A stretch of 63,849 bases of DNA, the filler included, from Reticulomyxa filosa (Eukaryota; Protista; Foraminifera), in assembly GCA_000512085.1 (NCBI GenBank). It is 27 parts of 27 records of this genome, joined end to end, with 100 filler letters (N's around TTAATTAATTAA, not from the genome) between each part and the next. Parts side by side here need not be neighbours in the genome. Positions count along the whole stretch, not along the records: positions 40,793 to 42,257 come from ASPP01018109.1; 26 more parts are not named here. The stretch is one strand, 5' to 3'. Below the pieces are notes generated by a model that was given only the letters and a program-made list of their open reading frames with translations, did not search any database and was not told where the DNA came from. A program made the translations under genes and the position numbers. Each line of letters begins with the position of its first letter. Positions within the stretch are counted from its first letter, which is position 1. This document shows positions 5,416 through 42,384 of this stretch, piece after piece.

Positions 5416-5943
5416 TGTAAAAATATTATTCAATAACCAAGTTTTTTTTGGTGCTTTGGAAAGAGTAACAAATGGGCTGCTCGAAATGATTTACAGATCC
5501 TTGTGATTCTCAATAGTCACTAAGGAGAAGTCATTTTTCCGTAAGGCTTCGTTATAAGATAAACTTTATTTGGAAAAACACTGATTGCGGTCTAACTTTG
5601 TCATACAGCAGCATTTTTTCACCGGAATTTCACCAAACAATAGACAATAGTTTGTACTAACGTCCTGAATTGGTTTGGACACTTCATTTTATTTTTTATT
5701 TTTAGACTTTGAAATTAGTGGTCATTTTACGTGATTTTTGATAGTACCCAAGCATTCTCTTTCCAATGTGAAAATACTATTCCATAACCAAGTTTTTTTT
5801 TGGTGCTTGAAAAAAATAAAAGGGAAAGAAAAAGAAGGAAAACCAAAAAGAAATAGTTTGTTCTAGGTGGCGCCAATGGGCGCCGCCTATTAAACTTTTT
5901 CTTTTTCGATTTTCCTTCTTTTTCTTTCCTTTTTATTTTTTTA
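5416..5943. repeat. Dispersed non-coding element: one ~350-bp unit, a repeated unit start and a long GC-core hairpin
   Basis: TAACCAAGTTTTTTTT(T)GGTGCTT occurs at ~5435 and ~5785. Boxes ACTGATTGCGGTCTAACT (5580) and TTTCACCGGAATTTCAC (5617). Inverted repeat 5810-5942. Homologous to 10108-10362 and 40793-42029. Confidence 0.85.
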
Positions 5944-10107: not shown

Positions 10108-10362
10108 CATTCTCTTTCCGAGGTGAAAAGGATATTTACCACCCAACTTTTTTTAAGGTGTTTTGGAAGGAACAATAGATAGGCTGTTAGAAATGCTTCG
10201 TAACTCCTTGGGATTCTCAATAGCGCCATATGAGAAGTCATTTTTCCAAAATGCTTCTTTAAAGTACACTTTTTATTGCAAAAATACTGATCGCAGTCTA
10301 ACTTTTTCAAAAATCAAAGTTATTTCACCGGAATTTCACCAATCGATTGGCAAATGTTTGTT
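10108..10362. repeat. Partial copy of the ~350-bp boxed repeat unit, cut by contig end
   Basis: CATTCTCTTTCC (shared with ~5753), GATTCTCAATAG, GAGAAGTCATTTTTCC, ACTGATCGCAGTCTAACT (10286) and TTTCACCGGAATTTCAC (10323) are collinear with 5416-5680. Confidence 0.85.
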
Positions 10363-40792: not shown

Positions 40793-41910
40793 TTATCAAC
40801 TCTAAATTCTTGAGTCATTGTCCATTAGAGTAATACAAAACTAAAAATCATATAATCCAACCAAGTGGCATTTTGGAAAGAGGAACACTTGGACAACTCA
40901 AATATACTTTTTAGTTTCTATAAATTTTAATACAATTTCACATAAGTCAATTTTCAGTTATAACTCACTTAAGGTCGAGTAACATAGTCAAAACTGATTG
41001 CGGTCTAACTTTTTACCACACCGAGCTTTTTTCACCGGAATTTCACAAATGTGTTTGCAATATATTGGTCTATCATCCCTGAATTGGTTTGGTAGTTTTA
41101 CGGTTTTTTACATATTTTAATGTCGTTATCAATACTTAGGTCCTTTTATACCCCTTAATTCTCCCTTCATCCCCCATTACAGTACTCCAAGGCTAAACAT
41201 CACATAACCCAACCAAGTGGCGTAAAAAAAAGAAGAGCATTTGGGCAACTCAAATATATATATAAGTTTGTATAATTATTAATACAATTTCATTATCAGT
41301 CAATTTACATTTATACTTAATTAAGGCCATTACAGTCCAATAAAAACTGATTGCGGTCCAACTCTGCGCCAAATCAATATTTTTTCACCGGAATTTCACC
41401 CCTGTGTTTGCAATTCATTTATCTATCGTCCCAGATTGGTTTTGTAATTTCGAATTTTTCAAATTTGTATTCATTTTTTTTTATCAACTCTAAATTCTTG
41501 AGTCATTGTTCATTACAGTAATACAAAACAAAACATCACATAATCCAACCAAGTGGCATTTTTGAAAGAGGAACACTTGGACTACTCAAATATACTTTTT
41601 AGTTTCTATCAATTTTAATACAATTTCACCATAAGTCCATTTTCAGTTATACTCACGTAAGGTCGAGTAACATAGCCAAAACTGATTGCGGTCTAACTTT
41701 TTACCACACCGAGATTTTTTCACCGGAATTTCACAAATGTGTTTGCAATATATTGGTCTATCATCCCAGATTGGTTTGGTTATTTTATGTTTTTTTACGT
41801 ATTTTAATGTTGTTATCAATACTTAGGTCCTTTTATACCCCGTAATTCTTCCTTCATCCCCCATTACAGTACTCCAAGGCTAAACATCACACAACCCAAC
41901 CAAGTGGCGT
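40793..41910. repeat. Tandem array of ~335-353-bp boxed units (A-B-A'), 688-bp higher-order period
   Basis: CAACCAAGTGGC at 40858, 41210, 41546 and 41897. TTTCACCGGAATTTCAC at 41030, 41383 and 41718. 40793-41220 is nearly identical to 41481-41910. Confidence 0.92.
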
Positions 41911-41915
41911 AAAAA

Positions 41916-42029
41916 AAAAAAAAGCAAATGAAGACAAAATCAAAAAGAAAGGATTGAATTGGGCGGCGCCTGAGGCGCCGCCTTATTCAATCCTTTCTTT
42001 TTCGATTTTCCCTTCATTTGCTTTTTTTT
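41916..42029. repeat. Long imperfect palindrome (~56-bp arms, GGCGGCGCC-TGA-GGCGCCGCC core) capping the array
   Basis: Left arm AAAAAAAAGCAAATGAAGACAAAATCAAAAAGAAAGGATTGAATTGGGCGGCGCC versus reverse complement of the right arm AAAAAAAAGCAAATGAAGGGAAAATCGAAAAAGAAAGGATTGAATAAGGCGGCGCC. Confidence 0.92.
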
Positions 42030-42384
42030 AAAATCTTGGCAATGTTCGAAGTTTTGAATTGTCATTTTTTTAAACTGATTGTGCTATTTTTAGCGCAAAT
42101 AGTATTTTGTTTTATTCATTTTTATAATATATTGCCCTTTTTTGACTTTAATATGAGACAATGAAATTATGTTCAAATTGTATTTAAATCAAATTCATTA
42201 GTTTTATTTTTTAAATATGCGATAGATAGAAACCTTTTTTTTATTAATTGTTGAGTANNNNNNNNNNNNNNNNNNNNNNNNNNNNNNNNNNNNNNNNNNN
42301 NTTAATTAATTAANNNNNNNNNNNNNNNNNNNNNNNNNNNNNNNNNNNNNNNNNNNNAAAAAAAAAAAAAAACAAAAAAAAAAC

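Follow-up and report, generated by a model that had tools for sequence, protein, structure and literature searches.

What kind of sequence is the tandem array that runs into a long GC-core hairpin between positions 40793 and 42257 of the window (the whole stretch of joined DNA, 63,849 nt in length): the end of a mobile element, an ordinary satellite, a protein-binding array or a structured RNA cassette? The analysis covered this 1465-bp piece only, which has a GC content of 31%, and did not include the fragments at 5416-5943 and 10108-10362, to which the earlier note had attributed the same architecture. The piece marks where a non-coding tandem array of satellite type ends on its 3' side, most likely in an AT-rich eukaryotic genome. 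The reading that we favour, with a confidence that falls a little short of probable, is that of a transposon-associated satellite, i.e., that the array represents the central-repeat part of a non-autonomous element of the HINE, DINE-1, pearl or DTC84 kind.

Positions 40793-41927 were found to form a head-to-tail array in which two unit types alternate in the order A, B, A, followed by the head of a further B unit:

40793-41144, + strand: unit A1 (352 bp), 94.3% identical to A2 and 72% identical to B1
41145-41480, + strand: unit B1 (336 bp), 72% identical to the A units, with a T9 run as its 3' end
41481-41832, + strand: unit A2 (352 bp), from the repeat alignment with A1 and B1
41833 to ~41927, + strand: head of unit B2 (unit columns 1 to ~93), identical to B1 at 87 of 92 aligned bases and 65% identical to the A units

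The tandem units, three full and a partial fourth, are non-coding and arranged head to tail, as in satellite DNA, while those that lie one period apart are far more alike than neighbours, as in higher-order repeats: A1 and A2 differ by 20 substitutions, and the first 93 columns of B1 are 94.6% identical to the B2 head. The locus had been described as at least three ~350-bp units plus a hairpin, and the count stands, yet the array is more than a series of such units, being a 688-bp dimeric higher-order repeat whose period is one A-B dimer, with successive dimers ~94% alike and A and B ~72% alike. The dimer was duplicated recently (~5.5% divergence), and an array of this type would be expected to grow by unequal exchange or replication slippage. 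Units end at their 3' side in runs of four to nine T residues. The array was missed by Tandem Repeats Finder, as both the 688-bp period and the A/B divergence lie outside the limits of that program.

In agreement with the earlier claim that the element encodes no protein, the longest ORF in 40793-42257 is 58 aa; neither an edge-running ORF of at least 30 aa nor a tRNA was detected in the same interval. A spurious 56-aa frame spans the conserved boxes described below; a word search with this frame and exact look-ups of the two ATG ORFs gave no match. Pol III A and B boxes, a CENP-B-like box and a yeast ACS were also considered, and were judged by eye to represent chance occurrences in AT-rich DNA.

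Among known satellites of ~360 bp, the TCAST satellite of Tribolium castaneum consists of AT-rich monomers belonging to two interspersed subfamilies that are 70-80% alike and that possess a subfamily-specific region (PMC3411249). The present locus is likewise AT-rich, with a similar monomer size and two subfamilies of comparable divergence, although its units measure 352 and 336 bp as opposed to 377 and 362 bp in TCAST. Identity with Tribolium TCAST1 was rejected at primer level, the primers being without a match at three or fewer mismatches, and identity with Drosophila 1.688 was rejected at the level of a pan-family probe. Separately, 14 of the 16 positions in a segment at 40959-40974, which surrounds the palindromic motif AGTTATAACT, agree with a TCAST1 primer in reverse complement, a borderline resemblance (equalled in 1 of 300 shuffles) that is probably due to chance.

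The array leads into a long palindrome with a GC-rich centre, which folds as follows:

41916-42029, no strand: imperfect palindrome of 114 nt, A-run at left and T-run at right, arms ~91% alike (DNA fold)
41961-41982, no strand: centre of the palindrome (GC core), where a 10-bp G+C stem encloses a 3-nt loop (fold)

The long GC-core hairpin proposed earlier is real, its two arms (41916-41971 and 41973-42029) giving a DNA fold of -53.7 kcal/mol (z = -12) that was equalled by none of 200 shuffles. The arms differ from each other by four mismatches and one indel, which points to a genomic palindrome of some age and not to an artefact of foldback or library origin. That the locus is an assembly or library artefact, i.e., a chimeric foldback or a collapsed repeat, is therefore exceedingly improbable, as an artefact would give perfect arms; the diagnostic differences between A and B units are also consistent from unit to unit. 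What such an explanation does accommodate is that the piece is a short contig, the left edge of which, at 40793, falls inside the array with the first A1/A2 difference 29 nt further on, as would be expected of a break in a k-mer graph. This edge is probably an assembly-graph (k-mer) break and not an element boundary, and on account of its position just before the first A1/A2 difference it would be uninformative regarding the 5' end of the element. Similarity between the palindrome arms and the unit sequence was not significant. Growth of the palindrome from a small unit stem, CCAAGTG..CACTTGG, was rejected as well, since this stem is not significant in the A units and is missing in B.

A transcript of the palindrome would form a long hairpin, which speaks for the suggestion that the locus is a structured ncRNA cassette, or for its variant of a long hairpin-RNA or small-RNA precursor locus. 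This explanation is nonetheless very unlikely, and the cassette proposal of the earlier note was not supported: on both strands the folds of the units are no more stable than those of dinucleotide shuffles (z = -0.61 and -0.71), the RNAalifold consensus of A1, A2 and B1 is a weak one, at -22 to -24 kcal/mol across 356 columns, and its covariation terms are unfavourable (positive), no match to an Rfam family approaches the gathering score, and promoter-like and terminator-like sites occur at chance frequency only. The best of the weak Rfam matches, on the palindrome, are to generic or MITE-like long-hairpin miRNA models.

Within the units, six blocks of 13, 11, 14, 16, 20 and 12 nt are identical in A1, A2 and B1, the longest of these being the following:

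41715-41734, + strand: longest block common to all full units (20 nt, contains TTTCACCGGAATTTCAC), from the alignment

Its other copies lie at 41027-41046 and 41380-41399, and it contains a direct TTTCAC..TTTCAC repeat. The boxes listed in the earlier note are all present in every full unit, and the clustering of identity exceeds chance: mismatches between A and B are clustered, with 107 runs where 125.7 +/- 6.8 are expected (P = 0.005), while identical A/B runs of at least 10 take in 129 columns, compared to the 59 +/- 19 expected (P = 0.0002). The further claim that the boxes point to selection is not established here. In a test of low power, the 20 recent A1/A2 substitutions were examined for a tendency to fall outside regions of high A/B identity, and no depletion near the blocks was observed (local identity 0.748 compared to 0.751 overall, P = 0.46), and within this piece the identical blocks could equally represent gene-conversion tracts between subunits.

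These observations bear on the possibility of a functional protein-binding array, such as a centromere-like satellite, a replication or amplification origin, rDNA-spacer subrepeats or a viral 'homologous region' (hr), in which proteins would bind to the boxes, and the palindrome would act as a cruciform or origin element. The concentration of A/B identity in discrete blocks, the direct repeat in the 20-nt block and the strong palindrome would all suit such a function, which we nevertheless regard as improbable. The recent substitutions carry no independent sign of constraint, conversion tracts can also yield identical blocks, no rRNA or other gene is found nearby and nothing similar was recovered from viral collections; moreover, a viral hr or iteron origin would be expected to have a palindrome in each unit, as in baculovirus-type hrs, and there is one for the whole array here.

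The downstream boundary of the repeat proved to be less simple than an array that stops at a hairpin, and involves the following features:

42036-42071, + strand: remnant of a B-unit tail (columns ~296-336) ending in T7, matching the B1 3' end at 31 of 41 columns
42072-42257, no strand: downstream DNA, very AT-rich, unalignable to the units except for one inverted fragment
42157-42189, - strand: inverted unit fragment (columns ~132-164), 33 nt, 82% complementary to 41612-41644

On the left, B2 remains homologous to B1 across the A-run and into the outer portion of the palindrome's left stem. On the right, 42036-42071 aligns with the tail of the B unit, not with those of the A units, and constitutes the last + strand repeat homology, which is closed by a T7 run at 42065-42071 (B1 closes with T9), 42 nt from the end of the palindrome. 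The alignment score of this tail is 39 compared to a null of 24.9 +/- 3.8, a value reached by 9 of 3000 dinucleotide shuffles; at roughly P = 0.02-0.03 after allowing for several inspections of the flank, the homology is suggestive. Going by these alignments, the palindrome appears to sit within the last B unit, with a B head before it and a B tail after it, and ~196 nt of the B-unit middle are replaced by ~107 nt unrelated to the units. The array had been said to run into the hairpin just after a new unit start, and a B2 head of ~93 columns does indeed precede it, but the B tail resumes beyond. By the same token, similarity does not end at the T-run of the hairpin, as had been stated, given the tail at 42036-42071 and the inverted fragment at 42157-42189.

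The 228 nt that follow the palindrome (42030-42257) have a GC content of 21.5%. An interpretation of the whole downstream flank as a decayed unit, inverted or direct, was rejected, as long gapped alignments score at chance level. The 33-nt inverted fragment, located ~130 nt downstream of the palindrome and spanning the TTAATACAATTTCA and AAGTC..TTTTC boxes, was by comparison with A2 found to be well beyond chance (z = 5.1, with none of 500 shuffles as good). Either a unit that was inverted and has decayed or a partner resembling a TIR, as in the TCAST transposon-like elements, could explain it. TCAST is known to occur in dispersed short arrays and in a transposon-like form, with non-satellite DNA between a monomer and an inverted fragment of one, a structure capable of folding back (PMC3411249), and the succession seen here, i.e., + strand units, a palindrome and then an inverted unit fragment, is similar, although the TIR of TCAST measures 269 bp as opposed to ~33 nt for the fragment. 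It was also observed that 42072-42084, immediately after the T7 run, reads AAACTGATTGTGC, which is identical to the unit box AAACTGATTGCGG at 11 of 13 positions but out of unit order; taken alone, this match is not significant.

A boundary of this nature could quite conceivably belong to an ordinary satellite, a dimeric higher-order repeat shaped by unequal crossing-over, at a decayed and rearranged edge, with a palindrome that is functionally unlinked to it and that arose by insertion of a MITE or foldback element or formed in place, provoking the ~196-nt deletion in the last B unit. The presence of B-unit sequence on both sides of the palindrome and that of an inverted unit fragment in the flank fit this explanation at least as well as they fit a transposon; the palindrome arms are unrelated to the units, the 94% identity between dimers is typical of satellite homogenisation, Helitron and Helentron hallmarks were not observed, and the weak Rfam matches are only to MITE-like long-hairpin miRNA families. 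At the borders of the palindrome, which consist of A13 on the left (41911-41923) and T8 followed by AAAA on the right (42022-42033), a TA or AAAA direct repeat can be read on both sides, as an insertion would leave, but within A/T homopolymer runs these putative target-site duplications are uninformative. The palindrome taken alone indeed resembles palindromic MITEs in its length of ~114 nt, its A/T-run termini, its possible TA or AAAA flanks and its terminal inverted repeats, the arms being complementary over their full length (~91%). It departs from them in that the target-site duplication is ambiguous and in that the insertion would have been accompanied by the loss of ~196 nt of the unit, which a simple insertion leaves unexplained; a random insertion would in addition have had to hit the final unit of the array.

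The earlier note had put forward a rolling-circle terminus as one of its hypotheses. The 3' end of a canonical Helitron shares with this locus a GC-rich palindrome of ~20 nt in an AT-rich, non-coding repeat, but a CTRR motif follows its 16-20-nt GC palindrome at ~11 nt, whereas here this motif is lacking at that distance and the GC core is the tip of a 114-nt palindrome. On the + strand no CTRR was found within ~90 nt 3' of the core, the loop excepted, the nearest being at 42075, 93 nt after the core. The canonical Helitron version of the proposal therefore falls, while its Helentron/HINE version fits in kind only. Paramecium Helitrons carry satellites between their terminal sequences, but their right terminal sequences are described as ending in a CCAA motif (PMC13085455).

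Satellite-like central repeats in non-autonomous Helentrons are well documented, examples being DINE-1/DINE-TR1, oyster Cg_HINE/pearl and clam DTC84, and the general layout of a HINE comprises a left flank (subTIR, inverted repeat and microsatellite), repeats in one orientation and a right flank of ~60 bp (PMC4067079, PMC7492417, PMC3879986, PMC10048060). The right flank contains a 3' subTIR, and its short palindrome is close to a 3' end rich in T, with insertion occurring within TT and leaving no target-site duplication; the stems measure 5-10 bp, the palindrome lies 8-35 bp from the 3' terminus, and subterminal inverted repeats of 11-13 bp are present at both ends, in addition to the 5' inverted repeat and microsatellite (PMC4067079). 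Ordered unit variants are described in such elements, as are regions of reduced variability within units, the latter being reported for the central repeats of DTC84 and Cg_HINE (PMC3879986, PMC7492417). HINEs and the present locus are both non-coding, and the locus fits the HINE kind in its tandem repeats of a single orientation, its palindrome close to the end and its T-runs. Compared by description, HINE repeats are typically 140-180 bp long as opposed to the dimeric units of ~340-350 bp found here, and their stems are about ten times shorter than the 57-nt arms of this palindrome, which lies 42 nt from the end of the repeat homology in place of 8-35 bp from the terminus, with repeat-unit sequence around it where HINEs have a distinct, non-repeat right flank of ~60 bp. 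Within 40793-42257 no subTIR candidate or partner was found, and no microsatellite or left flank is visible there. On the basis of this comparison, the locus would appear to match a Helentron/HINE-type end in outline and to depart from it in detail.

Returning to the transposon-associated satellite, the palindrome and its T-rich tail would on this reading constitute the 3'-terminal module of the element, the structure at which a rolling-circle (Helentron-type) or other structure-recognising transposase would end strand transfer. Such a role would account for the presence of a strong hairpin ~40 nt from the last repeat homology. The location of the palindrome in the final unit would be expected of a terminal module and would be a coincidence for an unrelated insertion, and we consider this to be the main argument for the transposon reading. 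It is further favoured by the single orientation of the tandem units with their ordered variants, by uneven variability with identical blocks of 11-20 nt, as in the central repeats of DTC84 and Cg_HINE, by the fact that palindrome and tail both end in T-runs, by the lack of coding capacity, of a tRNA and of an Rfam family, and by the absence of matches from the prokaryotic, viral, plasmid and metagenome collections scanned. The identical A/B blocks would then correspond to the reduced-variability regions of such central repeats, kept either by constraint or as gene-conversion tracts. Against this reading, the inverted unit fragment in the presumed host flank suits a rearranged satellite edge equally well, and substitutions between A1 and A2 are no scarcer around the conserved blocks (P = 0.46).

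It is also imaginable, although unlikely, that the locus represents a family of non-autonomous elements, so far undescribed and structure-dependent (rolling-circle-like), in which whole T-run-bounded units of ~345 bp would be concatenated head to tail and transfer would be terminated by a unit whose centre is replaced by the 114-nt GC-core palindrome. The 3' signal of such a family would be unlike that of Helitrons (short hairpin and CTRR) or that of Helentrons (subTIR and short stem-loop). The locus resembles the transposon-carried satellite DNAs already described in eukaryotes and is probably ordinary; it belongs to a known kind of repeat and is new at most in its unusually long terminal palindrome. 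If it is transposon-borne, the array would provide another case of mobile elements that seed and spread satellite DNA, one in which both the terminal palindrome and the dimeric central repeat are unusually long, and could help to define the structure that such transposases need at the 3' end; if it is merely a satellite edge with an inserted palindrome, it matters for the repeat annotation of its source genome only.

The collections scanned for relatives of the locus were prokaryotic, viral, plasmid and metagenomic in nature. In IMG/VR, exact-pattern scans yielded nothing beyond chance 18-22-mers in contigs that are unrelated, one of them GC-rich. No relative was found among the JGI metagenomes or the GTDB species genomes, which did not return the locus itself either, and no match was obtained by blastn against plasmids and phages. 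A second copy of the palindrome was likewise not found in IMG/VR or the JGI metagenomes. A non-coding stretch of this size, built of units of ~345 bp at 31% GC and missing from the prokaryotic and viral collections, most likely derives from an AT-rich eukaryote, and no sign of a human origin was seen. Literature searches with strings of the boxes and hairpin core yielded only unrelated primer matches, and those by unit size returned nothing comparable.

The recent substitutions within the array permit a minor observation regarding its host. Five of the 25 substitutions that distinguish A1 from A2 and B1 from B2 fall at CpG sites, which make up ~3.5% of bases, and three of these five are changes of CpG to TpG or CpA. 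The observed/expected ratio of CpG is 0.72, no lower than that of GpC (0.68). The CpG-site substitutions hint at CpG hypermutability (cytosine methylation) in the host.
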